The position numbers and the translations under genes were made by a program. A stretch of 22,753 nt of DNA from contig JADGIF010000079.1 of assembly GCA_018985225.1 (NCBI GenBank), forward strand, positions 1 through 22,753, given 5' to 3'. The DNA comes from Amoeboradix gromovi X-113 (lineage: Eukaryota > Fungi > Sanchytriomycota). Shown here one piece after another: positions 99-20,833 of this stretch. Each line of letters begins with the position of its first letter. The first letter of the stretch is position 1. Below the pieces are notes generated by a model. That model made no database searches. It had not been told where the DNA came from and was given only the letters and a program-made list of their open reading frames with translations.

Positions 99-109
99 AT
101 ACTATTCTT

Positions 110-149
110 GATAAATGATTTGTTTTACAAAATTTAATAGCTGTAAACT
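110..149 (-). repeat. Candidate left-end motif of the Fanzor-like element family
   Basis: The minus strand reads GTTTACAGCT...AAATCATTTATC. Ungapped by-eye matches: 27/39 to 14628-14666 and 27/41 to 13051-13091. Confidence 0.5.
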
Positions 150-239
150 TGGTACAATATCTGTGGTTCAGAAAACATTTCATTCGTCAACAAACTGATG
201 TATACATCGTGAATGAACTGCAGAATAGGAAATATGATC

Positions 240-770
240 GTTTTTTGCACGCGCCCAGTAGTAAGTAAAGAAAGAAAAAAACAAGAGATAAATCATTTGT
301 TGGGAAGTTTTCTCAAAGAATCATGTCAACATATACAGCAGTGCCTAATAAAAGCTGATTTACAACATGCCACATACTGCAACGCCATAATGTCGCTGAG
401 TTTAAATAAAGCAAGTTTTACAGTGTCTGCTACCAGAAAATTAGAGATAACAGGGTTGCACCTCATTGATCAACGATCACGGCCGTTTAATCACTATGTT
501 ACCGTTTTAGATCCGGATCACAGCGCTGCTATAACTTAAAATATCTAGAAGATAGTTGTTTGACTACCTATAAATACCTAATTGATAGCAAGACCACGAA
601 TGACCCACAATTATGAGACACTGTCCTAGAAGTTACACCGACTATAGCTAGTCCATTTTTGCAAAGTCTTGACTATTGAATCTTATTAATATCATTATGA
701 TAATTGGATCTAAAACTATCATGCACATGAGATATAAATGACCCCTGCTCTTTTCCAATCAAGAAGATTC
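240..770 (+). pseudogene. Possible Fanzor/TnpB relic I, retaining a RuvC-I-like segment
   Basis: Left-end-like ATAAATCATTT at 288-298. ORF 213-539 ends VTVLDPDHSAAIT, one base change from LDPG (510-518), the RuvC-I hhhDPG pattern. Downstream frames are broken. Confidence 0.3.
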
Positions 771-843
771 CAATAAACCACATGATTGGGTGCAAGTGAT
801 TGGCTAATTTACAGTTATAAAGACCGACTCCGGGAAGTTAGAA

Positions 844-1038
844 ATGAATTCAAAATGTTTCTGCGCCAGAAAAGCCAGTTTAGTCGGAACCTGCAGATAC
901 TGCTCTACTAGTTTTTGTTTAAAACATAGACTGCCTGAAGATCATACCTGCGTTGGGGACTATAAAACCGTCAAGAAGAACGAACTATCCGACAAACTCC
1001 TAAATGAAAAGTGCGTGGCATCAAAAGTAAGCTCTTAA
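844..1038 (+). CDS. AN1-type zinc finger protein (ZFAND/Tmc1-like), 64 aa
   Basis: C-x-C...C-RY-C...[13 protein letters not shown] is the AN1 pattern, followed by a typical C-terminal 'KCVASKV' tail. There is an in-frame stop upstream at 805. Confidence 0.9.
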
Positions 1039-1232
1039 TATTTATTGAGTAAATTACGTTTCAATAAACCGTTTAACTAATACATCTGATCACTTGGGGC
1101 ATGCTTTAGAAATCTTAACTAAATTATCAAAACGTATGCATGAAAGACATAATACGAGTCAAAAAATAGACCTCATATTATCACCTATATTTTAGAAGAT
1201 AGTACGTTGTTATCAGTGCCTTTTTGGACTTT

Positions 1233-1335
1233 CTGAAATCTAGATTGAACAAAATTAATATTTATCCACCAGGAGCACACGCTCGTTAAAAGTTCTGATT
1301 TATGAGAATATGAAGAATTTCAACAGAGAAACTGT
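1233..1335 (-). ncRNA. Candidate omega-RNA 3' half (copy F)
   Basis: The reverse complement of 1282-1333 matches 15139-15190 at 44/52 ungapped. Terminal motif TGTTCAATCTAGATTTCAG at 1251-1233. Confidence 0.6.
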
Positions 1336-1667
1336 CAGAGACTTTCCGGTTGATGATAAGAGAGTATGACAAGTTTTTAAACAATTATACAATTAGAGAG
1401 GTTAAGTTCCTTTAATCATTGTATATGATTTATCGAATTAAATCGGTCGTTGTAGCATCCTACTTGTGTAGAAAATAATGCCAAATAAATTTATTTTTTC
1501 TAATATCAAGTGACCAATTATTACAAGTGCGTAATATCTTTCCTTTGTAGAATGATGCATTAAGAATTTATTAGCAATTACTATAGAGTTGAAGTATTTA
1601 GAATCTCGAGACCTGAACCAATTTGTCATCAAAGAAAAGACAGGACTTCATGTTCATGCAAACAGAA
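1233..1667 (-). pseudogene. Fanzor/TnpB-like relic F (RuvC-II to YTS region plus 3' module)
   Basis: ORF 1438-1632 (KYFNSIVIA...STKERYYAL...EKINLFGII..YTSR) follows the motif order of the Fanzor C-terminal half. It lies directly upstream of a block matching the 3' module of relic B. Confidence 0.65.
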
Positions 1668-1974
1668 AGGACATCAAATATAAAAACTAGACTAACTCTC
1701 TGAGACAGCTTGAATCATTATATCAAGTGTGTATTAACCGATAGTAGATTACATTAAATTAATCTTATTGGTTGCACATTTTGCTTAGACACTCAAAGAC
1801 CTTCACAATTTGAAAGAGATAGTGGGTCATCTTGTTATGTTTTAAAGAGAGGAATGACATTTATGAAAGAAAATTGGTTTGAAAGAAGAAGGACTTTTAT
1901 TAATAATAGTATTTCCTCTTTATGGAGCACTTCCTTTAAAAACGATTTAGTCTAGTTTTTATATTTGGTGTCCC
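1668..1974 (+). mobile_element. MITE copy 2, complete, 307 bp, 28-bp TIRs
   Basis: Left TIR (A)GGACATCAAATATAAAAACTAGACTAA at 1668-1695 and right TIR at 1947-1974. The interior is colinear with the reverse complement of 20522-20812. No ORF and no clean TSD. GGGAC termini are compatible with Merlin- or PIF-type TIRs, superfamily unresolved. Confidence 0.95.
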
Positions 1975-2182
1975 AACGCAAGACCTAGTTCTCAAATTCC
2001 AAGAAAACTTGCTGATTTGTTTTCATACGTAGCCACGTATTAATGACACTCTTTTGGTACAATCAGCGACTTCTCTTATCTATAACACTTTTCATTTAAT
2101 CTACTTTGCTAGAATTATAGTTTCACATTATTTGATTTTTGTCGGTTTTATTTCTTCCACAACTCCGTGATACTGAATACCA

Positions 2183-4379
2183 ATGGATTTTTTTGATTCT
2201 ACTAAAGAAGCTCCAAAACCTGTTGATTTTCCTTCATATCCTAACACAAGATATGACATTGATCGTCCAGAAAGCCCATTGATATATAGCAATTACACTT
2301 GGTTATATCCTGATAATATACCATCTTTTGAAATCTTCTCATGTGAATTGCCTTTTGTCAAAATAGAATTAAATGAGAAATACAGCGATAAATTCGAATC
2401 CAAGTCTGATTCAGCTAATGACTTTGCACAGCATTTGCGCCTGTCTATATCTAAGGATGAATTACTCTCCAATCATTCAGATGATCTTGTTGACCCATTA
2501 GATGAATTATTACCTCAAAATACCAAATTAAAGCCTCGCAGTCTAAGTATAGATATCCCTCCCTCACCAATGGATATGCTGCCTAGTCCTAGGGTGTCTA
2601 TTTACAATGCTCAACGAGATAGAACATCGAGCATCACTTCAGTTGCAACTAACATTAGTGCTATTCTCAACAACTATAGCAATACTGCGGAAAAACAAGA
2701 AACAAGTATTACAGAGTGGAAGCAGATTAGTGTGTTTTCTAATGAATACAAAGAGTTTTTATTAATGATATGTAGCAGTGTTTCCTATCCAGTCTCTGAT
2801 AAATTCTGGCCCAATTTATTGTCCATTGATTACCCTTTAATAAACACTAAAGATGCCGCTTTCGAGGTCTATTCCGGTCAAGAGTACTTGAAATATAAAG
2901 TACTAGATAACTGTCCTTTTAATGGTAACATATACAGTTTACTAAATCATCTTATAGTTCGCTTACTAAACTCATCAAATAACAAGTCTTCAACTCGAGA
3001 TGTACTAAATGCACTGGCGTTGTTCCGATTCTTTTGTTTTATTATCGAATGTGAGTTTGATTTATCATTCTTTAACCCTAGTAAATCAGATAATTCTCCT
3101 GTTAAAACTAAACCCGAACTAGACATTCTTTGTGAGTTGTTGATTAAAACAATACAGAATTCCAACTTCACTTCTTTACTGCATATATCTCTCTATAATG
3201 AATCTATCCATGTTCTTGTTTTGTTAATGAACAACGTCGACTATTTAAACAATTATATCACTCTTGAGTTTGCTAACAAATTGCTAGCCAACGCTCTTTC
3301 ATTCACCTCTCCCAGCACTCTGTATGGCTTGCTTTCTATATTTGCTACTACTTTGCCTCCGAGTCTGGAGTATTACCATAGCTCTAGTTTGTATTTTTAT
3401 TTACTGGTAATTTCCAAAGACATTGCTTTATTAGATGATTTAGATTACAACCTTGTGTATAAATCATTAGAATACATTGAGCAGTTGCCTCTTTTACAAA
3501 CATTGCTGTTTTTGGTGATTCATAACAAACCCTCATTTATTGGGTACTTGAAAAGCAAAAGTGACCCTGAATCTTTTATAATACCTATACTACATGTGAT
3601 TCATAACAATCTACGTAACAAAAACCGGCCCGCCTGTTCTTTATATATATCATTGCTATTGTTATTTATTCTTACCAATGATAGCCAATATGCCCAGCAA
3701 CTCCAGAACATAACAATAGCAAATGCTCCTGTTTTTATAGATAAAAGAATGGGGAACACCAGCTTGTTAAATATCGTGTTTGCCAGCTGTACTCTATTGT
3801 TGATTTACAACTCTGGTGGCCATAAGGACAAGTATATTCAATCTATGTCACTATATATACTTTATCAGATAGCAAACAATATCAAGCAGATACATCCCTA
3901 TGGTGCTCACAAGTTTATTGCAATGATGGAATCGTTTTATAAGAAATTCAATGAGGGCTCAACAGTCTACTATGATATCCTGATAAACTGTATAAATGTA
4001 CTGAACGTACTTGTATCAAGCAACAATGTTAAGCAGAATGTAAATATTATTTATTGCTTGATTTATAAACAAAACTTATTTGAAGCAATTGGACACCACG
4101 AAGGATATGAGGAGTATTCTATGAACATATTGAAGGTACTGCAGATTAATGTAGGTGGCACATCTGTTAGATGAAGTTAAATCAGCAAATTATAATGATC
4201 CTGAATTATTGTACAATATGGTCGAAAATGCAATGATGAAATGGCAGAGCAATATAGTAGAACCAGTAGAAATTATAAAACTCAAGTATTCAATAGATTT
4301 GGAATTCTTTAACTCTTATATATGGATGGAGATAATGGACTATCCCATGATTCATTGGGGCCTGCAGAACTACAATTAG
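2183..4379 (+). CDS. DYM: Dymeclin-family protein, join(2183..4135,4155..4379), 725 aa
   Basis: Motifs YLKSKSDPESFIIPIL, HKDKYIQSMSL, QIHPYGAHK and NVNIIYCLIYK. After splicing, LKY..EFFNSYIW matches the dymeclin C-terminus (LKFKY..EEFFIPYVW). Confidence 0.85.
4136..4154 (+). other. 19-nt GT-AG spliceosomal intron
   Basis: GTACTGCAGATTAATGTAG. Removal fuses ORF 2183 in frame to ORF 4155 (AAG|GTG). Confidence 0.8.
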
Positions 4380-4496
4380 TAAACCGTTATGTAAATATTT
4401 GAAGTTTTACAGCTTAATACAACGTGATTTGCAGCAAACACAAATATGTTTGAGGTTAATTCGGAGAATCGTGAGAAATGCTCCTTGTTTCAATAC

Positions 4497-5141: not shown

Positions 5142-5510
5142 ATAAATCCGGTATTTAAAATATACGCTACAAGGGAAATTCTATTAGTGGACCTTCTCTG
5201 GATGTGGGATTCACTACAAAATCTCCTCAAACGTTTTAAATCAGCTTAGCGACGAATCTTCAGTATTCCCGAATCTTTCGCCACTGCACAATAATCTCTA
5301 CAAGGTAAAGATTGCGATAAACGTACTCTGATTCCAATCAATGACTACGTCATTATGAGCATATTTGGCACTCTGACACAGCCTTGAACTTAAACGAGAT
5401 CGCTGAATGCCATATACGTGCAACCGCCTTCTTGGAAAAGCTCTCTGTTTTCAAGTCAGAAATAGGCAAATGCGTTGGATTAAAATAAGGATGCTATGAA
5501 ATGTAATCAA
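5142..5510 (-). pseudogene. Fanzor/TnpB-like relic E, internally deleted, with 3' hairpin
   Basis: The minus strand gives ISDLKTESFSKKAVAR..FKFK..CQIC (5370-5359)..LESEYVYRNLYLV, a frameshift, then RDYCA (5299-5285), comparable to relic C (VCRNCHLILDR). A long hairpin follows at 5226-5174 whose G-U pairs work on the minus strand only. Confidence 0.55.
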
Positions 5511-5552
5511 CTCCATATACAAACTTAATTCTATTTTTTCATGTACAATAAT

Positions 5553-8087
5553 TTATTTGTTTAAATCTTTAAACTTTATACTGTTCGTACAACATTTCTT
5601 GAACGTGTCTTCGTATAGTTGCATTGTGTATAACGGGTACTCTTTATTCTCTATTTTTTTTAAAGTGGTGCTCAAGTCAAAGTCACCGTAAGCTCGTTCT
5701 CCGTGTACTATTTCATAGAGCAATATCCCAAAGGCAAATAAATCATCCATTTCGCCATATCTGTAGCTCAATCCATGGTTGAATTGCTGCACTATCTTTG
5801 AGTTTAGATACCTAGCATACAATGGCTGATTTGCATCATTATGTGTCATTATCGGCTTAATTCTTATTTCTCCAACCACCAGTCTCATTGTATTTATATC
5901 CATGATATATACGCAGTGCAGGCCTATGTTACCATGGTACTGCTTCTTAGCATGCAGTGCTGTTATTCCTGTTATAATTTGTGGGATTATCTGTTTCACT
6001 TGGTGTTCGTAATCAGTTAGTTTTAAAAGGTTAGTGGCAGAACTTAAAAACCAGTCGTATAATGTTAACTCGTAGTGCTCATATATGATCAAATTCTTAT
6101 TTGGAGTTTCGCAGTATCCAATAAATTGGTGAATCTTTACAACCCCACCCAGCTTACAAGCCATTTCTACTTCCTCTATAAAAATTAACTCATTTACTTT
6201 CTCGAGGCTTTTTATTAAAATTATCTTGTTGTTATCATCCAACAACAGCTTGCCTCTTTTTATCTCGTATATCCCCACATGTGCAATTACCTCTAATGGT
6301 TTGATTAAATGTGACGGAATCTTAAACTCTTCAAAGTTTTTGATTATTTTGTCAATTGGAACTACAGGTGTATTCTTGTGTATCTTATGCTTTTTGTAGC
6401 TCTTTCGTGACCAGATTACGAGAAAGACTAACAGCGACATTGCCAATGCCGACATAACAGCTAGGATTGCTATAACTGCAGACGGCAGCCCTAAAGAGGA
6501 CTCTACTGATGCTGCGTTAATTGCAAGTGAGGGAGTAGGAGCGACAGTGATAGCTGCTGGAGCAGTACCGACAAAGTAAATACTGGGCGACTCATAAGAA
6601 GCTATATGATCAGTTTTAGATATGATTGAATCAGGCAAGATATGCAAGGTACTTTTAATTCTAGGAGCACCTATTTTATTGGATGCGGTACTTAGATCAT
6701 AAGAAATAGCAGAGTCATGAGCACTTGTGCTTGCATATGAATTCGCTATATTGGATATCGGGTTGGCAGCTGAGTCTGTGGATCTCATTGTATAGTATTT
6801 TTGTGGTTTATCAGCATTGGATACCGCAGTTGACGGTATGTTTTCTGAATCATACACAAATGATTGCGCATTATGTGACTCGTTGACTTGGCACTGATCT
6901 AAGTATATGGATTGATATATAGTGTCATAGTTGTACTCATAGTAATCTGAATTGGTATAGTTGACTATAACAATTGTAGGATGATTGTTTTGAATTGTGG
7001 AGTAAATGGTCATGTTGCTGTAAATGTTGGTTAATAGATTAACAGATTGAGAGGTGCATAGAAGGGTGACTGTTGACGACTGCTGTATCGATGTTGTAAA
7101 TGAACTGGACAAAACGCTAGTAAAGTGATGAGTAGCTGTGTCTAATGAAGTAATCGTAGTATTGAGATATTGTGTTGTGTTAGCTGTAACAGTGATATAA
7201 ACATCGCTAGTGAATATAGCAGTGGATGAGTGCAACGGAAAAACAGACTCATTCGGACTTAAGCAGTTGTATTCGATAAACAGGCTAGGAGACAGCAGAG
7301 TACCGTAATTAGATGATTGCATAGTTTGTGGAGGCAAAGAATAAGACAGGGTATGATTCACATAAGGATTGGAACATGAAATACATGTGCTATAATTAAT
7401 GCAGGTCTTGCAATTCCGAGGACAAGGATTACAATTTACACCGTCTAAGTAGTAGCCATCAGAACAAGATAGGCATATGTACTCATTACAACTGCTGCAA
7501 TTCAAGTTGCAGCTGTGGCATGAGTTGAACTTGAAATATTCATTTGTCAAACATGAATTGTCAGTACAAGTGCCATTTAATTGAGGAGATCTAACTAAAT
7601 CAGTCAGTAAATAGTGCTTCTTATATTTGCAACTTATGCAATCATGTGCCAAAGGACCGAGACACTCGTAACAGTCATCGTGGCAAGACTTACATAGAGT
7701 AACACCCCACATATTTTGGATGTTAGATATGTAGTAACCATAAGGACAAACAAATACGCAACTGAGGCTTCTATTGTTGGGGAGCACTTGCTCACCAACG
7801 TACCTCTTGTCCGAGCTTGGAATGGCAAACCCCCAATACCAGTATTCCCCAAGTGTATAGAGCCATTTCAAGCCCATTAACATGCAGTCCACATCATCAA
7901 ATGAGTGGTCTATTATGACACCTTGTACCCAGAACACTTGAGCCAATAATTCACCACTTGGTCGATTTGGATTATCACCTGAGAAGAGATATCTAGACTT
8001 AGAACCAGTTGTTGGGGGCCAAAACCATAGCTGGCCAAAATCATCTAAAGTGGTGTCGTTGTTTATGTATAGTGGAATATCAATCAT
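5553..8087 (-). CDS. Single-pass receptor-like pseudokinase: furin-like Cys repeats, S/T-rich stalk, TM, degenerate TK/TKL-like domain
   Basis: CKSCHDDCYECLGP..DCISC-type repeats and TM AVIAILAVMSALAMSLLVFLVIW. Kinase landmarks ILIK, FIEEVEM and DDLFAFGILLYEI are present, but HRD reads HGN and there is no DFG. Confidence 0.8.
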   Translation of the reverse strand: MIDIPLYINNDTTLDDFGQLWFWPPTTGSKSRYLFSGDNPNRPSGELLAQVFWVQGVIIDHSFDDVDCMLMGLKWLYTLGEYWYWGFAIPSSDKRYVGEQVLPNNRSLSCVFVCPYGYYISNIQNMWGVTLCKSCHDDCYECLGPLAHDCISCKYKKHYLLTDLVRSPQLNGTCTDNSCLTNEYFKFNSCHSCNLNCSSCNEYICLSCSDGYYLDGVNCNPCPRNCKTCINYSTCISCSNPYVNHTLSYSLPPQTMQSSNYGTLLSPSLFIEYNCLSPNESVFPLHSSTAIFTSDVYITVTANTTQYLNTTITSLDTATHHFTSVLSSSFTTSIQQSSTVTLLCTSQSVNLLTNIYSNMTIYSTIQNNHPTIVIVNYTNSDYYEYNYDTIYQSIYLDQCQVNESHNAQSFVYDSENIPSTAVSNADKPQKYYTMRSTDSAANPISNIANSYASTSAHDSAISYDLSTASNKIGAPRIKSTLHILPDSIISKTDHIASYESPSIYFVGTAPAAITVAPTPSLAINAASVESSLGLPSAVIAILAVMSALAMSLLVFLVIWSRKSYKKHKIHKNTPVVPIDKIIKNFEEFKIPSHLIKPLEVIAHVGIYEIKRGKLLLDDNNKIILIKSLEKVNELIFIEEVEMACKLGGVVKIHQFIGYCETPNKNLIIYEHYELTLYDWFLSSATNLLKLTDYEHQVKQIIPQIITGITALHAKKQYHGNIGLHCVYIMDINTMRLVVGEIRIKPIMTHNDANQPLYARYLNSKIVQQFNHGLSYRYGEMDDLFAFGILLYEIVHGERAYGDFDLSTTLKKIENKEYPLYTMQLYEDTFKKCCTNSIKFKDLNK

Positions 8088-8142
8088 TCCAGATATTCAC
8101 AACAAAGAAAATCATTTTGCGGTTGTAGAAACAGGGAGCATA

Positions 8143-8979: not shown

Positions 8980-9015
8980 AGTTTTATCGTAATTTACTTA
9001 TTTATGCTAACCTGT

Positions 9016-9201
9016 TTATGAATCAATAGCTAAACTCTTTCTATAAGTTTCATCCACACCTAAAGACTTTTTGGGATTCTTACTCTTTACAGGTGTTTTC
9101 TTGCATCTGCACAACCAAAATAGCAATACAAGTAGAACCATAGACCCACCCAAGGCTCCAGCTACACTGTAATATACAGTATTATAGTCCAAATCAGCCA
9201 T
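9016..9201 (-). CDS. Small single-pass membrane protein, 61 aa
   Basis: ATG start, hydrophobic VAGALGGSMVLLVLLFWL, then CRCKK and a basic tail. Tightly convergent with RSM25. Confidence 0.65.
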   Translation of the reverse strand: MADLDYNTVYYSVAGALGGSMVLLVLLFWLCRCKKTPVKSKNPKKSLGVDETYRKSLAIDS

Positions 9202-9287
9202 CCAAAAAAGATGAGTTAGCCGTAAGCCACAAAAAATCTTACTTCATTTGTGTCGTTTTTTATCCCTCTGAATACAGGTTTCCTTGA

Positions 9288-9722
9288 GGTTGCATTTAAA
9301 GCTTTTACGTCAGCATCTATGGAGAATGAAGAGTATCTAATTTCATAAGGGTTGTTATTTTAAAAGAACTCGTAATTTATTCTCGAGAGTATAGTTCTAT
9401 GAGATATTTCTAGTGTAATTTACTTGATGTGTCCAACCTTATGCCCATCAAATAGGACAAAAAATTATTGAATATCAATTCACGGATTTCATTCTATGCC
9501 AAGTAAAAAAGGTGTTAATATGGAATTTACAGCTGAACCCTAGTCAAATATTTCAAAATTTAAACAGATTCTTAAATAATTGTGCGGTTTTTGCGTTGTT
9601 TTCATGCACACTTTGTAATGGAGCGAATTTTAGATATCATCCCAAGTTACCTAGAATTCAGAGATGTGAACTCTGAATTCTTTCTGGTCTTCGGATTAAC
9701 ATAGCCAAAGTCTCGACATTCA
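9288..9722 (+). pseudogene. Possible heavily deleted Fanzor-like relic H
   Basis: Begins AGGTTGCAT, as relic G does. Fragments FKQILK*LCGFC and FSCTLCNGAN (about 9559-9629) precede a perfect 11-bp hairpin at 9653-9681. Confidence 0.3.
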
Positions 9723-9950
9723 ATGAAGGAGCGGTTTATGATTTGGGAAATTAAAACTTAACATTGGTACAAGCCATCAACGACAAAATTTGAAAAATAT
9801 AAAGCAAATAAAAAACATTGCATATTTCAAAGAGCCAGCTATCGTCTTGTAGAAAATTTCAGGATTTGCGTGAAGATAATCTACAATCAACATCTTTTTT
9901 TAAACTTTCAAAATTATATCTGGGTACCGTCTTGATATAGGCCAAAGTAG

Positions 9951-12900
9951 ATGGAAAACGAGCAACCAAGAGTTAGGAAGTACGGTGGAGTGCGTGAAGC
10001 TGCTGCATTAGAATCTAAGCCAGATGAATCTACTCAGCATGTAAACTTATACACAAATATTAGAGATTCACCTCCAAATCGCGATAACAATAATCAGTCT
10101 GAAAATGCCGAAGTTAAGCCAAGGCGTTTATACGGTACTGCTAGGGGAGATGCTGCCCTGCCTCTAGAAGGGCCCACGGATCCGGAGGAGGAACCGGAGG
10201 AACAGGAAGCCGTGATCGAAGAAGTGACTGAACAAACTGCTATGGACTACTTTGCTGGTAATAAAATTGACAAGGGAAAAATGACCTCAACTTCCGAAAA
10301 GAAGGATGTCAAAGTCAAATTTGGTAAGTCTGCAAAACCTGTGAAGTTGAAAAAGAAGCTGACAGCAGAAGAAACAATGATTGGTCATCTAACATTTAGA
10401 AGAAAGGCGTGGATGTTCTTTGTAGCTATTATGACTTGCTGGATTCCTGAAAGATGTGTGAAAATCAGAATAGATTCACCTGAGAAGCGTACAGCCTGGC
10501 GTGAAAAGGTTACACTTTGTTTGTTGATGTTGTGTTTTTGTATTGGTGGCATTTTTACTCTGGAAATTAAGAGATTCATTAGCTGTGTCGATGGGGATCC
10601 TAAATTAAACATCATAAATCCCATTCACAAAAACGTCGTCTCCCAAATTGGTAACACTCAAGTTTTACTTAACGGCCAAGTATTCAATGCTGATCCTAGC
10701 AGTAAACTGGGCGCATATGTGTCAAAGTATGCTGGTGTTGATGCATCCAAACTGTTCCCTCGTGTTTTTAAGGGTACGTACGATCAGGATCTACAAAGTT
10801 GTATAAATGATACTATAATTGACAGGGTCAGTAATTACTACCAGTATCTCCAGGCATATACTTCAAAGCGTAAGTATAACTTAACTTTTGATAACCCGTC
10901 TAACAGTTATATCAATTGTATGGATCCGAATGGTGCATACACAAAATGTAGATATGGCCCAGACATCGAATCGGATCTGAGTGAGAATTTGGTGGGCTCC
11001 ATTTTGCTGGACAAGGAAAAACTTATGAATGAAACAGATCGTAAATGGTTTATTATTGGAAACACCGCATATGACGCAACGGAATATGTCAATGGCATTT
11101 CAGAATTTGACTGGAATGATCCATTGCGTCAACCACCCGGTAGCGCTTTAGATGTTTATAGTAGAAGGTTCTTTTTAAATGATGATATCACTATATTTAT
11201 AATGAACAATTTTTATACAGATGCCACCGCTAATTTTGTTAATTTGAATGGCAGTCCAGCTATCCAAAAATGCTTTGATAAGCTTTTCCTGTACGGATAT
11301 GTGGAACCTCAAAATAGATTTGCTTGCTGGGTTTTAAACATTCCATTTTATGGCATGTCAGTTATTGTTTTATGGATATTGTACTTCAGGTTGATAACTG
11401 CGTTGTTATGGTATATTATTACACCTCGTGGCTACAGGAAAGACGCGTATGTGATATGCTTTATTCCATGTTACACTGAAGGTCCATCTATGGCTGTTAC
11501 ACTGGAAACGCTAGCTGCAGCTGATTATGAGGATGAAAAGAAGCTGCTGATGGTTGTTTGCGATGGCAACATTACAGGTAAAGGTAATTCCAAGCCAACC
11601 CCAGAGGTAGCACTAGATTTGCTTGGGTGGAAAGGTGAGCAGCCCAAGGCAAGAGCTTACTTGGCTTTAGGCAAGGCAGATGCAAAGGTTAACATGGCAA
11701 AAGTTTACAGTGGGTTCTATGAATTTCAAGGACATACCGTGCCATTCATGGTGATAGCTAAGGTCGGCAAACCGAGTGAAGCATCCGCAAGCAAACCCGG
11801 TAATAGAGGCAAGAGAGATTCGCAATTGATTTTAATGAACTTTTACAACAAGTTGACTTACAAAGGTAGAAAAATGTTTCCCTTGGAGTACGAGATATAT
11901 TTTCATATTAAAAACGTAATCAAAGTAGACCCGCTAGAGTACGAGTATTGTTTAATGGTGGATGCAGACACCAAAGTAGATGAGGGCAGTCTTAAGTATC
12001 TGATCGGACCTTTAATTGAAAATCCGATGATTATAGCCGCTTGTGGTGAGACCCAAGTGAGTAACAAATATGCATCCTACACCTCAATGATTCAAATATA
12101 TGAGTACTGGATTAACCATCATTACGGTAAATGTTTTGAATCATTCTTTGGCAAAGTGACATGTTTACCTGGTTGTTTCTGTATATACAGAATGAGGTAT
12201 CCTAGAGGTGAACCGTTCTTGTGCTGCGATAACATAATCAAGGACTACAGCATAAATAGAACAATGACATTGCACACCAAGAATTTACTACATTTGGGAG
12301 AAGACAGGTATTTAACAACACTGATCCTCAAGCATTTTCCTACAAAAAGATTGGTGTTTTTACCCATGGCAATGTGCTCTACTGATATTCCTGACAAGTT
12401 TGAGGTTTTAAAATCTCAAAGACGTAGATGGATAAATTCTACTTTCCATAATCAATATGTTCTGTTTAACATTCCTAAGATATGCGGCAGATGGTGCTGT
12501 GATATGAAGCTACTAGTCATGTATGAACTATCATCATTTCTAGTTATGCCAGCTGCTACGCTATATTTGTACAGTTTAGTAGTTCGGGGTCTACTTCAAG
12601 GTAATAATAGTTAATTTAGCCGGTGACTACACCATTACTTTAGCAGGACTAGCTGTACTATACGGAATACACATGGTGATCATATTTGTACAAAAAAGAC
12701 CGTCGTACTTGTTATGGCTCTTTATTTATACAATTTGCAGTTATCCTATACATGGGTTATACTTGCCAATGTACAGTTTCTGGCACTTTGATGATTTTAG
12801 TTGGGGAAATACTCGACAAGTAAGTGCTAAACAAATAAAAGCAGAAAATGATCAGGAAAATGAAGAAATATTAAGGAGACTACCGCAAGGATTCATATCC

Positions 12901-13023
12901 GATTATCAGCAACAAGACGGAAGACTAGATGTCGATGAGGATGAAGACTGGAGTATGTTGAAGAAAAACGCTTATAACAGTACAGAAAATTTAAAAGGAA
13001 CCAACAAGTATAATGGAGAATAA
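9951..13023 (+). CDS. CHS: Chitin synthase, division 2 (no myosin motor), join(9951..12600,12620..13023), 1017 aa
   Basis: Motifs AWREKVTLC, cytochrome b5-like region, CYTE, PGNRGKRDSQ, DADT, CLPGCF, LGEDRYLT, SQRRRWINST and FDDFSWGNTR. Confidence 0.96.
12601..12619 (+). other. 19-nt GT-AG spliceosomal intron
   Basis: GTAATAATAGTTAATTTAG. Removal gives G|CC (Ala) and restores the frame into the conserved WGNTR exon. Confidence 0.88.
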
Positions 13024-13052
13024 CGAATAAAATAATTTAATAACATTCAAAA

Positions 13053-13517
13053 GGTTGCATATTATAAATTTCACTGGATAAACCATTTATCGTACTATGC
13101 GAATTTTATTGCTCAAATGGTTCTTGATATAAATCCCCAATCAAAAAGTATGCTCAGTATTTCTCGTCCACCGAAACGACTTGATATAATTTGCAGCTAG
13201 AATATTTCGAGCTCCAAGGTATCAGTGGATATCGAACAAACTTTCTAGGCTCACTAACTGGTCTAAAAACGAAACTATAGTCCACAAAAAGGGAAGAGAT
13301 CCAGAAGGAATGGAATTCAGTGGAATTCTAGAAGACGCACAATGCAAAAACGGCGTTTATAAGTAGATGGAGACTATGCGGTTGAAGCATTTGCATCCAT
13401 GTCTAATCACGCCTTGGTGATACAGTGGTATCAGTTACTTGCGTAACGAATCGACTGAAATTCTAGAAAGAAAGACTTCTAATTAGAATTTCTGCGCTTG
13501 TTTCAATCTTTTTTCAT
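13053..13517 (+). pseudogene. Degraded Fanzor-like relic G with structured 3' module
   Basis: 13075-13092 matches 14650-14667 at 16/18. Fragments KLSRLTNWS, CKN and VDGDYA (13363-13380). Three perfect hairpins (13418-13433, 13434-13447, 13457-13492) and terminal TGTTTCAATCTTTTTTCA similar to the F end. Confidence 0.45.
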
Positions 13518-13518
13518 C

Positions 13519-14556
13519 CTAGATTAGCGCTGTGTCCCTTTTATACTTGCTATTCATGGCAGATTGGGTGTTGACGGATGTGAATGTGTTTAATGTGCCC
13601 AAGCTATTCTTTCTGCTGAATCTAGATTTTACAGTTGGAATTTTAAAAACCATTGAGGCAATTTTTACCAGAACACATAGTCCAGCGAATCCCGCAAACA
13701 GAAGGTAAACTAGTAGAGGGCTGGAAGAGGAAGTATCCGGAGCATCATCTGACGGGGCTATTTCTGATATATACAAGGACAGAGATGACCTGGCTTTACT
13801 TACCGTGACGCTATATACATATTTAGAACTTAGTCTAAATGCTGATTTTGAAATTGTTGTGCTCTTTAAAAACGTTCTAGTATTGGGTAGAATAAGGGGA
13901 CTATACAAAAATGAATGAACACAATCCGTTAGCAATGCAATCCTAGGGTTACCAAGCAGGGGATTGCTTGATAGGTCACAAACAATCAGGCTAGAAGTGT
14001 TATGAATGACAACATCAGTTATCAAGTTGTAATTTATACGTAACTCCTTCGGTTCATTCAACACAACTGTTCCTGAAAATTGATTGCCTCGTATACCTTG
14101 GTTACCCAAAGTCAATACTTCCAGATTTTTTGGTAGTTCTGGAACATCTCCAACCATTTCATTTCCAGTGAGCTGTAATTGGGTTAAATTTTGGGGTAAG
14201 TTGCTGGGAATAGAACCGTTGAATGAGTTTCCGTACAAATTCAAGAACCTCAATGTAGATGGTAAATCGTCTGGTATATGTCCTGTAATCTTGTTATTAG
14301 ATAAATCCAGTAATATCAAAGATTTGGGTAGAGCGATCCCATTTAAAACGCCTTGCAAGTTACCAAATCTAACCGAATTCCATTTAATCTCCGTTATGGT
14401 GTTGTTTTTACAAGTTACATATGGGCTACAACAATCATTTACAATTGCTTGGTACTCGTGAGGGTATGCGCTCTCCATCCCCAATCCACTTGCTAAGTTT
14501 ATCACGTTGGAGCAATCATCTGACGTAGTGTAGCTTTGTGTTAGAAAAACAATCAT
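13519..14556 (-). CDS. Leucine-rich-repeat receptor-like membrane protein
   Basis: Cys cap DCC..VTC..ITEIKW, plant-type repeats LxxLxLxxNxxxGxIP, TM LLVYLLFAGFAGLCVLVKIASMVF and a short cytoplasmic tail. Confidence 0.88.
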   Translation of the reverse strand: MIVFLTQSYTTSDDCSNVINLASGLGMESAYPHEYQAIVNDCCSPYVTCKNNTITEIKWNSVRFGNLQGVLNGIALPKSLILLDLSNNKITGHIPDDLPSTLRFLNLYGNSFNGSIPSNLPQNLTQLQLTGNEMVGDVPELPKNLEVLTLGNQGIRGNQFSGTVVLNEPKELRINYNLITDVVIHNTSSLIVCDLSSNPLLGNPRIALLTDCVHSFLYSPLILPNTRTFLKSTTISKSAFRLSSKYVYSVTVSKARSSLSLYISEIAPSDDAPDTSSSSPLLVYLLFAGFAGLCVLVKIASMVFKIPTVKSRFSRKNSLGTLNTFTSVNTQSAMNSKYKRDTALI

Positions 14557-14627
14557 AATCGGCTAGAAACCATTAAGTTGTTTTTATACGCGTCGCATTG
14601 TTTTGATTGGTTAATACGTTGATAATA

Positions 14628-15226
14628 GTGTGCAGCTCGATTGTTTTCTTGAATAAATCATTTATCGCGAATTTGTATATATTTTTGTATCATTTCAAGA
14701 CTTTTCCAGATTTTTCTAATAGCTTAACTACTCGATATTCTTCCTATTCGCAAGTGGTAAATGGAATCTAAAGAAATAACTAGCAGGTGCAGCATACATT
14801 CATCAACACTGATAAGCTGGTCCAAACACGGAATTCGAGGCCATGTACAATATGTGGCACTCTAAAGAAAACCAATTTGGAGAGCTGTTCATGAACATAG
14901 TGTCATTTGGAAGTGGACATGGACCACATGGCACCAAGGAACAAATTCGATGCCATGTACGAGGTATGGTACTTTAAAGAAAACCAATTTAGAAACCTGA
15001 ACCTGTACAAAGTGTCATTTGAAGATAGATAGAGACCATATGGCAGCAGGGAGCATATACGAGTATCTGCACCCTTATTCAGTCCCACCACAGGGTAGTG
15101 CAAGCGTGAGCGATCCTTGTAACGGAGAAACTAGTATTAGTTTCTCTGTGGAAATTCTCGATTTTCTCGGAAATCAGGAATTTTAACGAGGAGTACAACT
15201 TTGACCATGTTAATCTAATATTGCAG
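14628..15226 (+). pseudogene. Fanzor/TnpB-like relic A+B with two tandem Zn-finger/RuvC-III units
   Basis: A (14832-14942): NSRPCTICGTLKKTNLESCS*T*CHLEVDMDHMAPRN. B (14944-15060): NSMPCTRYGTLKKTNLET*TCTKCHLKIDRDHMAAGSIY. Both fit the TnpB/Fanzor signature TSxxCxxCG...CxxC..xxDRDxxAAxNI. Confidence 0.85.
15069..15226 (+). ncRNA. Candidate omega-RNA (copy B)
   Basis: Lies immediately 3' of DRD. Stems at 15071-75/15092-96, 15125-33/15138-46, 15152-15183 and 15207-12/15216-21. Homologous to copies C, D and F. Confidence 0.7.
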
Positions 15227-15473
15227 ACATTGTAACTCTTTCTGGAGACCCTGAACTCAATTTCTAGTAGAGACAGATTAAGCTACAAAATTTTCTCTCT
15301 ATCATTATTTTTTACGTTCGCAGCCAGCTATGTTCGTCACCTTTGAGAAAGATGAATTGGTCACGTAGCTCAGTAGGATCCTTCTTATCTGCTAACTAGT
15401 ATGAAATAATTTCTTTTATCATTCGAAAAGTGTCTTGGTGAATACTTGTTCTAGTTTTCATATTTGGTGTTTT
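15226..15473 (+). mobile_element. Degraded MITE copy between relics B and C
   Basis: 15233 onward resembles 1693 onward (TAACTCT..GAGAC..TGAA). 15337-15363 resembles 1803-1829. 15450-15470 matches the right TIR at 20/21. Confidence 0.6.
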
Positions 15474-15494
15474 ATATGTTTAGGAGGGTTATTT

Positions 15495-16004
15495 TGCGAG
15501 GAACGGAAGAGCCGCGAGCATCAAGAAAGAGTGGAGAATTTTTCTATACCCGCAATGATACACAACATAAGCTTCTTTAATATTTGCAAAACAATATTTA
15601 TTTCCAGAATGAGTTACAAAGCATGTCCCGAAATCAGCAAAGACACAATATGTCATATGTAAATACCTAATTAGAAACTTGTCTAAAGATTAAATTATCG
15701 ACCAACGAAAGGGGAAAGAGAACTGTTGAATGGCATAAACCGTAAAATAGTTAAATGAGTACAAGGTGTCGTACTCTGAGGAAAACCGATTTAGAGTTAT
15801 GTGTGTAGAAACTGTCATTTAATTTTGGATAGAGGCCACATGGTCACATAGACGGATGCGTATTCAATCTCAGCTCGGCATATTGGAAGCGTGAGGAATT
15901 GCTGTAACTGAGCGACAATTATTGCTAGTTTTCCATTCAAACCTCTTGATCTTTAGAAATCCAGGACTTTCAAGGAGACTACATATGGTAAATTAACCAT
16001 TGCA
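15495..16004 (+). pseudogene. Fanzor/TnpB-like relic C
   Basis: ERKSREHQERVEN..IHNISFF..KTIFISRM..ISKDT resembles the bridge helix/RuvC-II region. 15758-15851 gives STRCRTLRKTDLEL, a frameshift, then VCRNCHLILDRGHM, homologous to A and B. Confidence 0.8.
15854..16004 (+). ncRNA. Candidate omega-RNA (copy C)
   Basis: Colinear with B (TATTCA..AAGCGTGAG..TGTAAC.GAG..GAAATC.AGGA..ATTGCA). Stems ATGC/GCAT (15856-59/15878-81) and ATGGT/ACCAT (15985-89/15996-16000). Confidence 0.65.
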
Positions 16005-16012
16005 TATCAATA

Positions 16013-18265
16013 CTAAAACATCTTTGGCAAATCAGTAAACCCCTGTTCCCTACACTTCCAATAGTCGTTGTCAAACTTGTAGTATTCTATACCGGCTATT
16101 GAATGCACGTCCTTAGTAAACCATCTCGGTCCTAGATCGCTTTTCTTTTTTTTTTCTATTTCTTTCAACAACTTTTCTGCCAGCACGTAATCTCCATTTT
16201 CCATGGCTCTTAAGTCTTGTCTTAGCCGCGTGTCAGTTGGTGGCAGATATTCTTGCAGAGCATCTGTTATTTCATTCAGTTGTATCATAAATTTTGTGAA
16301 ATAGAAGTAGGCTGGCACCCTTTCTGCCATAGATGTGCAGTGCCACAATACTGTGCTTCTGTCTTCTACATCTATATTATCATGCATGCTGTTCATGTGG
16401 AATGTATTTGGTTCCTTATCTATTCGTTTGCAGGTGATGTGGTCATTCCAGTATCCACTTATATGCCACTTGTCCTCTATGCTGCCCTTGATCTTATATT
16501 GATTTTTCCTGAGCCAGTTAGCAGGTGTAAACTCTACAGTACTGCTTAACTTACTGCTTTGACAAGTTACGGTTAAAACACCAAAATGGTCAATCCATTT
16601 ACTACCTGTAAATATACCGTTACACAGCGCTTTAACAGGTTGCCATGTATAGACTTCTTGCTTGTTATCTACCATCAAAGTCACAATGGCATGTCCCAGG
16701 GGTGTTACGCTGATATGACTACCGTGGAAATGGGTTTTAACATTACTGGTCAAGTGCATGTTCCATGATTTGGATTCAAAATAGCAGGCAGATATGGAGG
16801 GTATTCTCGATTGCTGCTCGCATAATCCTATAAATCCCAAGTCAGGTCTACTAATCTCAAATGTTTCTCCCACCAATGGATCAAATGGTTTATTAGCTCT
16901 ATTGATTCCAGCAGAGTAGGAAGAGCAAGCAAACGCAGTAACTAATAATAGTCTCTCATATGGGTCTTCTTTAGCAACTGCCAAATCAAGCAAGTAAGAA
17001 TACTCCAGCATTTCACAATTACGATGCAGTAATGAACTGGGTTCACAAAAGCTAATTGGCAATTGTAAATGAAGGAGATCTTGACCAATAGCATCCTTAA
17101 GAAATCCGAACACATTAATGTTGGATTTAATTAATGTATGGTCAACTGGCAGCGTTTGTCGCCTTGATGTAGGATAACCAGGTACTGCCATAGAATTCAA
17201 GTTTATTCTCTCTATAGCATCAAAGAACTCATCATCTTCGCTTTCTTCCAATGCATCAATGGTGTATGAATTGTTGGGTTTTAACGTTTTCATGATTGTT
17301 GCATCCTTCTTCATGAATAACTCATCTAATGTAGATATGTGTTGCCTTATTTTCGCTATGCTTAGGTTAAGCACAGGCAAAGGCTCATTTACTTGCAAAT
17401 TTGAGTGCAGCAACTCCAATTCGCTTTTCATATTGTCCCTACAATCGTATATCTTACTATCTAATGAATCCAAAGCGCCAACAGATAGCAATGAGGTAGA
17501 TCTAGATAGTTTAGATTGTTTTCTATGTTCCAATACTTGTTTCCACTCAAATGCCTCTAGTTCTGTGTTTGCAGTCAACTTCCATCTAAAGTATGGGGTG
17601 CACAAATGGAATTCTTTATTGGACTTACTAATTATAGATAGCTCATCAATAGTCAGTATACCACGACAACTGGAAGACTCTTGAGTTAACGGATCATGGG
17701 TATAACAGGATAGAACTCCATCAGCATTGAGTTCGAAAAAACGCTTCTTTGCCTTGATACCCTTGCCTTTAATTAGATAGCCGCGTTTGATGTTGTGGAA
17801 CTCAGATGAAGGAGCGACTAGGTACGGTTTTAGTATTTTGGACATTTCATCATTTAGTTCCAAATCCTTAATAGAAGTATTAAAGTTGTTTCTGATAGAG
17901 ACATCTATAAAAGGAATCAATAAAGCAAGCATATCATGATTCTTGTTAATGATGCATTGATGGAGCATAGATTGGCCAGTTTGGTTGTTAATGCTATTCC
18001 AATTTACATACTTGGAAAGCGGGTGTTTAGAGTAAGGAATCACATTCTGGATATCGTTGGATAAAACCAAACCATGGCATTGCCGGGTGCAGCTGTCTGT
18101 TTGTCTTTTGATATAGCTATTCAAGATTTTAAGAATAGAAGGCGAAGCCAATTCGAAAACAGTAAACCCGTCCTCGTTATTCTGCCACAAATCCAGTACG
18201 TTGGAATCTAACAACTGTAGCAACTCTACGTCTTTGTTTCCTAAAACAAGATCATGCAGTTTCAT
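16013..18265 (-). CDS. Long oxysterol-binding protein homologue (ankyrin-PH-FFAT-ORD; Osh1/Osh2-like)
   Basis: Ankyrin-like N-terminus, PH domain (KRGYLIK..KKRFFEL..EWKQVL), FFAT EDDEFFDAIE, and ORD motifs LPISFCEPSSLL, KPFDPLVGETFE and LPPTDTRLRQD. Confidence 0.92.
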   Translation of the reverse strand: MKLHDLVLGNKDVELLQLLDSNVLDLWQNNEDGFTVFELASPSILKILNSYIKRQTDSCTRQCHGLVLSNDIQNVIPYSKHPLSKYVNWNSINNQTGQSMLHQCIINKNHDMLALLIPFIDVSIRNNFNTSIKDLELNDEMSKILKPYLVAPSSEFHNIKRGYLIKGKGIKAKKRFFELNADGVLSCYTHDPLTQESSSCRGILTIDELSIISKSNKEFHLCTPYFRWKLTANTELEAFEWKQVLEHRKQSKLSRSTSLLSVGALDSLDSKIYDCRDNMKSELELLHSNLQVNEPLPVLNLSIAKIRQHISTLDELFMKKDATIMKTLKPNNSYTIDALEESEDDEFFDAIERINLNSMAVPGYPTSRRQTLPVDHTLIKSNINVFGFLKDAIGQDLLHLQLPISFCEPSSLLHRNCEMLEYSYLLDLAVAKEDPYERLLLVTAFACSSYSAGINRANKPFDPLVGETFEISRPDLGFIGLCEQQSRIPSISACYFESKSWNMHLTSNVKTHFHGSHISVTPLGHAIVTLMVDNKQEVYTWQPVKALCNGIFTGSKWIDHFGVLTVTCQSSKLSSTVEFTPANWLRKNQYKIKGSIEDKWHISGYWNDHITCKRIDKEPNTFHMNSMHDNIDVEDRSTVLWHCTSMAERVPAYFYFTKFMIQLNEITDALQEYLPPTDTRLRQDLRAMENGDYVLAEKLLKEIEKKKKSDLGPRWFTKDVHSIAGIEYYKFDNDYWKCREQGFTDLPKMF

Positions 18266-18318
18266 AATGACAAGTTTTGGATTTCTGGAATTTGATTTTT
18301 ATGAGGGGACACTCCTCG

Positions 18319-19947
18319 ATGCATTTACTACTAGAAAGTGCCAGTGGATATGCGTTACTTGACTGCAAGCAAGATAAAGTCAAGACTAATGATTTACAAG
18401 TGTTTGGAAAAAATGTCAAGTTGGTAGCTTTCCAACCATTTACATCAGGTCAAGAAGCATTGAGCGCAATTCAGTCAATTTCAGATCATAAATTACCTGC
18501 CAGTTTGAAGAACTTTTTATCTTTGCATTTAGCAAAAGATACAATGTTAGGGTGTGAAAAGAATATGGCCGGGTTACTGAGTTCTGATTTTAAATGCAAT
18601 CATGATGATCATACATTTCAATTGCTCAGATCATCTCGCCATCTCCTACCAAAGTTTTTAAGCTCTCATGTTGAAACCGGTGACATCGAAAAGGCGCAAC
18701 TAGGCTTAGGCCATGCTTTTAGTAGATCTAAAGTCCAATTCAATGTTAATAAAGTTGACAACATGATTATTCAGTCTATTGCTCTATTAGACCAGTTGGA
18801 TAAAGATATCAACACATTTGCTATGAGAGCAAGAGAGTGGTATTCATGGGGATTCCCGGAGCTGGCAAACATAATGAAAGACCATTTGACATATGCTAAA
18901 CTGCTGTTAATCATTCAAGATAAAACCGACATTACTGATGAAAAGATTAAAGCAATCAAGGATTTAGTCATGGATGATGTTTTGGAAACTCAAATTGTAA
19001 AAGCTGCTAACTCTTCAATGGGACAGGATTTAAGTGTTGCAGACATAACATCTATTTGTGCTTTTGCGAAAAAGGTTGTTGACTTATTTGTTTATCGTGC
19101 TGAGCTATCTGCCTATCTTACCGAGAGAATGCATGGTGTTGCCCCAAATCTCAGTGCACTTATTGGTGAGTTGGTTGGTGCCCGGCTAATTGCACATGCA
19201 GGCTCATTAACTAACCTGTCTAAATGTCCAGCAAGTACTGTTCAGATTCTGGGGGCTGAAAAAGCATTGTTTAGGGCTTTAAAGAAGAAAGGAAACACTC
19301 CAAAATTTGGCTTGTTGTATCACTCAACTTTTATTGGTAGAGCTCAAGCACAGTTTAAAGGAAGAGTTAGCAGATTTTTAGCTAACAAATGTACCATAGC
19401 GTCTAGAATAGATTGCTTCTCAGAAGCGGAACAGGTTTCTGATGTATTTGGAAGAGCGATGAAGGAGCAGGTTGAAGAAAGATTGAACAATCTAAATGAC
19501 GGCAGAGACCCTGTGAAAAATGAGGACGTTATGATCAGAGCAAACAAGATTATGAAAAAGGAAGGAATCGTATTGAATAATAATTCAGAGGCAAAACCTG
19601 ATGTTATGGACATTGACGAAGCACCAAAAGCCAGCAAAAAAAGCAAGAAGAAGAGCAAGAAATCACTTGAGCCTGTTGTTGACGCACCAATAGCTAGAGT
19701 GGAAAAAGTAATTGCAAGTGAACCTTTAGAGACCCATGTAAAGAAGTCTAAAAAGAAGAAGTCCAAAGCAACAGTCAAGGCGGAAGATGTCGTTTTGGAA
19801 ACAGAACCAAAATTGGAGCAGAAACTAAAGGAATCTGATAAAATCGATGAAGTAGCTGTTTCTTCTAAAAAGAGAAAAGCGACGGAAGAAGCTGATGAAC
19901 CAGCTAAAAAGAAGAAGAAGAATAAAAAGTCGAAGACTGCCAAATAA
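18319..19947 (+). CDS. NOP56: Nucleolar protein 56 (box C/D snoRNP)
   Basis: QLGLGHAFSRSKV, IALLDQLDKDINTFAMR, PASTVQILGAEKALFRAL, RFLANKCTIASRIDCFS and a Lys-rich tail. Likely start is ATG 18319 (alternative 18301). Confidence 0.95.
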   Translation: MHLLLESASGYALLDCKQDKVKTNDLQVFGKNVKLVAFQPFTSGQEALSAIQSISDHKLPASLKNFLSLHLAKDTMLGCEKNMAGLLSSDFKCNHDDHTFQLLRSSRHLLPKFLSSHVETGDIEKAQLGLGHAFSRSKVQFNVNKVDNMIIQSIALLDQLDKDINTFAMRAREWYSWGFPELANIMKDHLTYAKLLLIIQDKTDITDEKIKAIKDLVMDDVLETQIVKAANSSMGQDLSVADITSICAFAKKVVDLFVYRAELSAYLTERMHGVAPNLSALIGELVGARLIAHAGSLTNLSKCPASTVQILGAEKALFRALKKKGNTPKFGLLYHSTFIGRAQAQFKGRVSRFLANKCTIASRIDCFSEAEQVSDVFGRAMKEQVEERLNNLNDGRDPVKNEDVMIRANKIMKKEGIVLNNNSEAKPDVMDIDEAPKASKKSKKKSKKSLEPVVDAPIARVEKVIASEPLETHVKKSKKKKSKATVKAEDVVLETEPKLEQKLKESDKIDEVAVSSKKRKATEEADEPAKKKKKNKKSKTAK

Positions 19948-19956
19948 AAACTTATT

Positions 19957-20523
19957 TCATTTATTGTAATTTGACCTCAATTCACTACCATACCATTGTG
20001 GATGTCGTAGAAAGATCACGCAACTCATGAAAGCATAAATGACTATCGATTTCGATTAAACAAATTATCCATTGCGATTAAGTGTGCTATATTGCTCCAA
20101 TACACTCTTTCTGAAGACGTTTATAACTTCGCAAACACTCGCTCTCTTTTTTCATATATTGCAAATAGCTCAAAATCGTCTCATCCTCAATAACTCAAAT
20201 GTAAAGACACAGTTAGCATACGCAGAGTGTTCTTCTTCAGAGAATCTTCTTATATGCGAGAAGATCATCCAGTAAACAAGAAAGCTCTTGACAGGCATCA
20301 AAATTGTTGAAGACAATGGAAGCCTTTATCTGGAAGTAGACAGCGACCATTTGCATCGAGGAAGCAATACTTTAAGTACGCATTAATTACCCAGTCCGTT
20401 TGAGATAATGGAAGTGCGAGTAGTCACTGTAACGGAGCGACTCGTACTGCGTGAATATTCATAAGTTTCTCGTAAATCAAGACTTTTAACGAATAACATC
20501 CGTGAATTAATCTTGATTTATCG
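19957..20523 (+). pseudogene. Fanzor/TnpB-like relic D (Zn finger deleted)
   Basis: Left-end-like TCATTTATTGTAATTTG near 19957. LLTGIKIVEDN runs into LEVDSDHL (20330-20353; compare A, LEVDMDHM), followed by the conserved 3' module. Confidence 0.72.
20380..20523 (+). ncRNA. Candidate omega-RNA (copy D)
   Basis: 20451-20492 matches B 15148-15189 at 33/42 ungapped. GGAAGTGCGAG..CTGTAACGGAGCGAC aligns with C. Stem CATTA/TAATG at 20381-85/20406-10. Confidence 0.68.
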
Positions 20524-20812
20524 GACACCAAATATAAAAACTAGACCAAGTCGTCTTTAAAGTAGGTACTTCATAAGGAGGAAATACTATTACTAATAAA
20601 AGTCCTTCGTCTTTCATTAATATCATTCCTCTCTTTAAAATATAACAAGATGAACCAGTATCCCTTTCAAATATACGAGGTCTTTCAGTGTCTAGGCAAA
20701 AGGTGCAACCAATAAGATTAATTTATTTTAATTTACTATCGGTTAATACACACTTGAAATAATGATTCAAACTGGTTCAGAGAGTTAGTCTAGTTTTTAT
20801 ATTTGATGTCCC
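20522..20812 (-). mobile_element. MITE copy 3, complete, 291 bp, inverted relative to copy 2
   Basis: TIRs (C)GGACACCAAATATAAAAACTAGACCAA and TTAGTCTAGTTTTTATATTTGATGTCCC. The interior is the reverse complement of copy 2 with substitutions and a ~16-nt indel. Confidence 0.95.
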
Positions 20813-20833
20813 AATTGTATTAATTTTTAAAAC

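Follow-up and report, generated by a model that had tools for sequence, protein, structure and literature searches.

How does the end of an RNA-guided nuclease gene, without its middle, come to lie again and again between the ordinary genes of a reduced fungal genome? The question is raised by 22,753 nucleotides (hereafter the window) of contig JADGIF010000079.1 from Amoeboradix gromovi X-113, a sanchytrid whose 10.5-Mb assembly (36% GC, 1167 contigs) was produced by multiple displacement amplification (MDA) of a sporangium (PMC8371127). The genome paper mentions neither repeats nor transposons. Comparison of the window with itself yields two repeat families (Table 1). Family 1 joins the start of tnpA, the gene of an IS607-type serine recombinase, to the end of fanzor2. 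Probably, these elements of about 450-600 bp are non-autonomous and were amplified and moved in trans by the TnpA of a parent element. The original prediction had proposed non-autonomous IS607/Fanzor2 derivatives of about this size, and it is borne out by the best structural match, a TnpA helix-turn-helix (E 6e-4) and sharp element ends. Statements about the genome beyond the window are based on EukProt proteins and on the contigs of one sequencing run aligned to the window at 80% likeness.

Identity and anatomy of family 1

The Fanzor2 remnant of the best window copy scores E 1e-32 against a hidden Markov model (HMM) of the family and E 2e-8 against an intact viral Fanzor2. Broken reading frames were searched as separate pieces, or with stops read as X. 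Treated this way, the piece at 15001-15183 matches Pfam PF07282 (E 0.019) and ranks first of the 1337 six-frame pieces of the window against an independent Fanzor2 HMM (E 0.005), so the predicted TnpB/Fanzor affinity holds for pieces of the window itself, as distinct from the consensus peptide typed in the original prediction.

Profile and homology searches of EukProt gave at least 54 annotated family 1 fragments of 99-166 aa on other contigs, among 7220 annotated Amoeboradix proteins. These fragments match TnpB models and have the C4 zinc finger and RuvC-III RD motif of PF07282 (E down to 1e-19). Among PDB structures, the family matches that of the mimivirus Fanzor2 L79 best (9b0l, E 1e-9); by this match, rather than by a tree, family 1 appears closer to Fanzor2 than to other TnpB/Cas12f proteins. 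The repositioned RuvC-II glutamate, six residues before the zinc finger, is a criterion for Fanzor proteins (PMC10711439) and is present in 98% of the fragments that cover the position, with the full pattern in 27 of 54; in the best window copy the position is deleted. All named homologues of the remnants come from EP00835 Amoeboradix gromovi, and when a 31-aa piece was run with HMMER against 1.84 billion representatives, the six proteins returned all belonged to family 1.

On a Fanzor2 profile of 543 positions, the match of every fungal fragment starts at position 414 or later, and the RuvC-I region, whose DPG motif lies at residue 335 in the viral relative described below, is absent from all of them. 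Several fragments begin with an IS607 TnpA-like helix-turn-helix (P0032, E 9e-7; P0006, E 1.5e-4), and the corresponding stretch of the best window copy ranks first of the 1337 pieces against an HMM of 20 TnpA N-termini. Fragments that start in this way give the order of the element: left end, tnpA start, deletion, fanzor2 end and right end, all on one strand. No TnpA catalytic domain was seen in the window or the fragments. The mapped copy has no terminal inverted repeat, as expected for IS607, direct repeats between left and right ends are not above shuffles, and an Rfam search gave no match. Most of the giant-virus IS607 loci that were fetched (L011, L020-L039) have tnpA and fanzor2 on opposite strands; in family 1 the two stand in tandem, as in L037, L038, L050 and L051.

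Within the window, clear family 1 copies score 17-56 bits in nhmmer against 2.7 for the best decoy. The predicted homology of four 3′ modules (15070-15193, 15870-15982, 20400-20497 and, on the minus strand, 1281-1348) stands at these scores. The zinc-finger/RuvC-III remnants at 14832-14943, 14944-15060, 15755-15848 and 20326-20380 are likewise homologous, with CxxC traces in three; they represent three elements and not the four proposed, because the first two arose by a 112-bp tandem duplication within a single element. The left end of the copy at 20040 reaches 7.3 bits against 6.2 for the best decoy. Among the weaker relics that had been suggested, the one near 13240-13420 survives weakly (4.3 bits as DNA; 4.4 bits as protein, with 0 of 40 shuffles as high), and 110-560, 5142-5552 and 8980-9950 score zero for family 1 with both the DNA and the protein profile. 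A further candidate, 808-1035 (+), is a host AN1-type zinc finger (PF01428, E 5e-12); it has no start codon in the list of open reading frames (ORFs) and is probably an exon of a small host gene. The window thus holds four to five copies of family 1, fewer than the eight or nine that the original prediction would allow. Of 6584 non-coding bases, 2165 (33%, or 9.5% of the window) belong to supported elements of the two families, so the intergenic space is not saturated with them, nor is nearly every gap filled.

Table 1. Elements of the two families, and their parts, in the window
Feature	Position	Strand	Details
Family 1, best copy	14634..15193	+	Begins with AG at its left end, followed by a tnpA 5′ piece, the deletion and a duplicated Fanzor2 tail; right end structured, with AG as its last letters; boundaries ±2 nt
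IS607 serine recombinase TnpA, N-terminal helix-turn-helix remnant	14761..14832	+	Same strand as Fanzor2 tail; HMM E 5.8e-4
First unit of 112-bp tandem duplication (zinc finger/RuvC-III segment)	14832..14943	+	77% identical to second unit
Fanzor2 C-terminal remnant	14944..15186	+	Zinc finger, RuvC-III Asp, C-terminal extension; stop at 14998-15000 breaks frame
Predicted omega-RNA scaffold	15100..15193	+	Two hairpins on a basal stem, overlapping reading-frame end; guide would be the flank after 15193
Family 1, older copy with longer Fanzor2 tail	15560..15982	+	nhmmer 56 bits; 58-bit protein chain from ~15558; left boundary uncertain
Family 1, old copy	20040..20497	+	3′ part 20326-20497 clear, nhmmer 33 bits; left end borderline
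Family 1, right-end module, remainder unrecognisable	1278..1352	-	nhmmer E 3e-7 with a profile built without it
Family 1, probable and very decayed copy	13240..13420	+	Helix-turn-helix trace and tail trace; weak
Family 2, complete copy	1667..1975	+	Terminal inverted repeats; Fanzor1-like last Cys pair and RuvC-III Asp region at 1758-1874
Family 2, second complete copy	20521..20813	-	85% identical to 1667..1975; Fanzor1-like tail 20606-20722
Family 2, 3′ end cut by window edge	1..99	+	Self-comparison, nhmmer
Family 2, decayed solo terminal repeat	15443..15474		Between two family 1 copies; 3 mismatches, 0 expected by chance
Family 2, decayed terminal repeat	22677-22704		Overlaps stop codon of WD40 gene

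Ends, deletion forms and copy number

The best copy has sharp ends. Aligned contigs break at 14633 (38 contigs) and at 15193/15195 (28 and 23 contigs) and then run into unrelated flanks, with an agreement of 0.41 beyond the family 1 ends; the dinucleotide AG stands at both. The deletion forms are also shared. One tnpA-fanzor2 junction is common to 10 fragments on different contigs, and the 112-bp tandem-duplication arrangement of the window recurs in P0002, P0042 and P0044, on three other contigs. Shared junction classes across contigs indicate that deleted forms were copied after the deletion, and together with sharp ends and unrelated flanks they point to transposition after deletion.

The number of copies is harder to fix. 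Summed depth over the best copy is 13,000-47,000 per bin (61,000 at 14679), against 14-74 on single-copy contigs; the resulting ratio of about 500-2,500 is distorted by overlapping short contigs and MDA and is not a copy number. Four to five copies per 22.75 kb extrapolate to about 1,800-2,300 genome-wide, a figure that is probably too high because the window was flagged for its richness. Conversely, the true number must exceed 54, as the open tails of the window copies are all too short for annotation. Taken together, this suggests hundreds to about 2,000 copies, with 54 as a hard floor. The genome-wide expansion foreseen in the original prediction is therefore right as to strong amplification, and what was amplified is a set of broken elements, not active nucleases.

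Family 1 looks like the product of a past burst that now consists mostly of decaying relics. The fragments have a mean identity of 81%, and almost none are near-identical. Conservation of the zinc cysteines (0.88) is no better than that of their neighbours (0.89), and 21 of 49 fragments have lost at least one. At 80% likeness, the depth over the two older copies in the window is close to that of single-copy sequence. Where the best copy differs from other copies, G>A (13 places) and T>C (9) are the most frequent changes.

Family 2 and giant-virus-like relatives

The second family, which the original prediction had missed, is an element of about 300 bp with 30-bp terminal inverted repeats (TIRs) that are 90-93% complementary (0 expected by chance). 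Eight metagenome contigs contain an exact match to a 24-nt piece of its repeat. On one of these (L005) the repeats enclose an ORF of 642 aa (274-2202) with a DPG motif, a repositioned glutamate, and a zinc finger with RD at 357, 570 and 617. The fungal interior matches the last 40 residues of this ORF: 41% over 39 aa (E 1.6e-4) for the copy at 1667 and 44% over 39 aa (E 4e-5) for the copy at 20521. The Atlas neighbours of the L005 protein are giant-virus clusters with PF07282 at 0.98; its single-sequence fold is of low confidence (pLDDT 32). By its size, its TIRs and the lack of Fanzor2 matches, family 2 classes as a Fanzor1-type ghost rather than a Fanzor2 one. Many family 2 flanks have A-N-N-T before the terminal GGG, and these flanks suggest a 4-bp, AT-rich target; in the window there is no matching pair of target-site duplications (TSDs), and no transposase was seen. 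One flank of the viral element (L005:1-144) resembles the end of a histone H3 gene; the flanks may stem from different collapsed copies.

Family 2 ends often lie near family 1 ends. Among contigs from other copies, 17 show this at the left end and 14 at 15193, with more nearby, and the same is seen at 20497/20521 in the window and in P0046. Exact abutting of the two families was considered and dropped; the joints may hold up to 40 letters, so the pattern is one of clustering.

Metagenome contigs with the family 2 repeat include one with the major capsid protein of nucleocytoplasmic large DNA viruses (L004) and one with a D5 primase-helicase (L001). Another, L003, carries an intact Fanzor2 gene of 551 aa (600-2252) between two family 2 ends that are 97-98% identical to L005. 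Of the full-length relatives of family 1 that we found, this protein is the closest (111.5 bits, against 72.5 for the next). It is 60% identical over 104 aa, shares the unusual C-terminal extension and has 9b0l as best PDB match (E 4e-24). The contig was retrieved by the family 2 repeat and not by Fanzor2, so the co-occurrence is not an artefact of the search, and the gene recurs in an independent run at 99.7%, again with the repeat just upstream. There is no capsid gene on L003. A search of IMG/VR gave no further relatives of L005, L003 or the element ends, and an apparent likeness of viral and fungal end sequences failed statistical testing. Giant viruses of zoosporic fungi are known (PMC12247965), and the parent of family 1 probably came from a giant virus.

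The remaining content of the window is ordinary for a fungus. In Dymeclin (4136-4400) and chitin synthase (12600-13023) genes the reading frame resumes after a frame change, which fits very short introns. On the minus strand, 5553-8087 encodes a receptor-like kinase with a Cys-rich extracellular part, 13519-14556 a leucine-rich-repeat membrane protein, and 9020-9350 open pieces that end in a hydrophobic helix and basic tail and look more like part of a spliced gene for a host membrane protein than like a relic. Atlas returned no annotation for 110-560; by eye, 270-545 (+), directly after a family 2 end, shows frameshifted motifs in Fanzor1 order (a Gly-rich stretch, then a Glu ahead of a disrupted Cys pair, and near 510 a motif resembling RD) and is possibly a third family.

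The spread of family 1 and its place among known systems

A parent element, with tnpA followed by fanzor2, would have entered the lineage, probably by way of a giant virus. Internal deletions with several distinct breakpoints would then have fused the 5′ part of tnpA to the 3′ part of fanzor2, and the short versions, which keep both ends, would have been moved in trans by the parental TnpA. Movement of miniatures by TnpA is the most likely reading of this step and is well supported by the anatomy. Known IS607 elements exchange at a 2-bp GG core without a TIR (PMC6188088); here the core would probably be AG, again with no target duplication. Since the right end also encodes the predicted omega-RNA scaffold, copies could guide Fanzor2 to their own empty donor sites, where the lost copy would be restored and excision would become a net gain, a process described as restorative homing (PMC13565253). 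Ghost omega-RNAs of Spizellomyces punctatus do work with their Fanzor (PMC10432273). Copies are seen between genes probably because insertions into genes were purged.

Several results weigh against parts of this account. The AG core is read from one copy and from end positions, as no empty site was seen. We found no intact parent of family 1: a full-length Amoeboradix Fanzor2 is absent from the best 120 profile matches, where it should have ranked high, and no search was aimed at an intact Amoeboradix TnpA. The nuclease negative covers annotated proteins from a short-read assembly. Of the intact ORF and adjacent recombinase that the original prediction suggested looking for, the TnpA helix-turn-helix remnant is the part that turned up. 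On the viral side, the L003 Fanzor2 has no adjoining tnpA, and its left end gives no significant alignment to the fungal left end. Finally, the right ends of the three older copies do not fold significantly, and the four window right ends yield no consensus structure.

The folding results bear on an alternative that differs from our preferred account in the RNA step only. The same non-autonomous family could have spread with no role for an omega-RNA, the 3′ tail being kept because TnpA needs a long right end and the deletions happened to spare it. With three of four right ends no longer folding, no covariation across the window copies, and IS607 TnpA known to suffice for transposition (PMC6188088), this is quite possible, if a little less than an even bet. 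Against it, the scaffold region is kept in all recognised copies even though their 5′ breakpoints differ. The fold at 15100-15200 is strong (z -4.2, 0 of 200 shuffles as strong), and in the intact viral gene on L003 a pair of neighbouring hairpins occupies the equivalent part of the reading frame (z -3.0 to -3.8). We regard the chances that an omega-RNA took part in the spread of family 1 as about evenly balanced. It is unlikely, by contrast, that the short forms never moved and are full-length insertions, each eroded at its own site because the shrinking genome is biased towards deletion. Several distinct breakpoints, the heavy decay of older copies and the 30 of 54 fragments that have a longer tail with the junction unseen would fit such a process; the junction and the duplication shared between contigs, the retention of both ends and the fact that no fragment reaches the middle of the gene do not.

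Selection by the host would be a different reason for keeping the copies, as a dispersed repertoire of guide RNAs or as small zinc-finger proteins used in regulation or defence, for example against family 2. Many fragments have open tails of about 124 aa, and family 2 ends often fall within about 40 nt of family 1 ends, which is the predicted guide position. The tail length follows from an internal Met and the 100-aa cut-off of the gene caller, the zinc cysteines show no special conservation, and clustering can arise from scarce intergenic space and a preference for AT-rich targets; we consider domestication very unlikely. Viral or bacterial contamination, or amplification chimeras in the single-sporangium sample, would be a concern in this genome, which was made by MDA and required decontamination (PMC8371127). 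This can be largely excluded. The copies have fungal neighbours (genes for chitin synthase, NOP56 and oxysterol-binding protein) and differ by about 19% at the protein level, and one contig of single-copy depth, 4612 nt long, runs without any difference from the end of one copy through two genes and a further copy. The most far-reaching scenario, in which a giant virus delivered both elements, nucleases acting in trans homed thousands of miniatures, and family 2 ends fall in the family 1 guide position so often that one nuclease is directed at the other element, in a conflict between RNA-guided transposons that is still partly active, is improbable.

An earlier survey, from 2013 and covering 80 sequences in total, reportedly could not demonstrate IS607 transposition in a eukaryote; the fixed ends and unrelated flanks of family 1 do point to transposition. 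As in that survey, the zinc-ribbon tail is the part most often kept, and a horizontal, possibly viral, origin is indicated. Family 1 shares with the eukaryotic and viral IS607-type elements IS607EU, ISvMimi/ApmFNuc and ACa-1 (PMC3627910, PMC10530073, PMC13565253) a tnpA helix-turn-helix, here a remnant, and a Fanzor2 with repositioned glutamate, zinc finger and RD; its best copy also resembles them in a structured right end and in having no TIR and apparently no TSD. It differs from IS607EU-type elements in that all copies seen are 450-600-bp internal deletions in a fungal nuclear genome, in numbers far above the three copies of mimivirus, with the predicted scaffold inside the end of the reading frame and a core that is apparently AG and not GG.

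Ghost Spu-1 of S. punctatus (PMC10432273) has about 550 nt, has lost its nuclease gene, keeps its ends and omega-RNA region, and occupies 134 loci with functional RNAs. Family 2 is its direct analogue. Spu-1 is a Fanzor1 element with inverted repeats and 19 full-length genes, whereas family 1 is a serine-recombinase element for which no intact Fanzor2 was found, at an estimated density several-fold to more than 10-fold higher. Like the Sola2-type and viral Fanzor1 elements DFa, PPa and SFav, which have short TIRs and 4-bp AT-rich TSDs (PMC3627910), family 2 is bounded by GGG...CCC, is often flanked by A-N-N-T, and has a parent (L005) that encodes Fanzor alone; no transposase and no matching TSD pair were seen, so it is left without a superfamily. 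Earlier counts run to 122 Fanzor copies per genome in ORF-based surveys (PMC10530073) and to about 150 for CMe-1A (PMC3627910).

Thus IS607EU/Fanzor2 elements and Fanzor ghosts are known parts. What is new is the scale, the occurrence in a reduced fungal genome of miniatures that derive from IS607 and fuse tnpA to fanzor2, the co-existence of two Fanzor families, and relatives of both on one virus-like contig. We found no published account of either family in the part of the literature that was searched. If true, hundreds to about 2,000 IS607-derived miniatures in 10.5 Mb would be strong natural evidence that a serine-recombinase insertion sequence can amplify in a nucleus. With so many insertion sites, purely computational tests of the core, the target-adjacent motif, scaffold covariation and the homing model become feasible. 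The viral Fanzor2 of 551 aa, being intact, is a natural enzyme to pair with the fungal scaffolds, and the viral contig shared by both families offers a lead on how Fanzor elements may move between giant viruses and zoosporic fungi.

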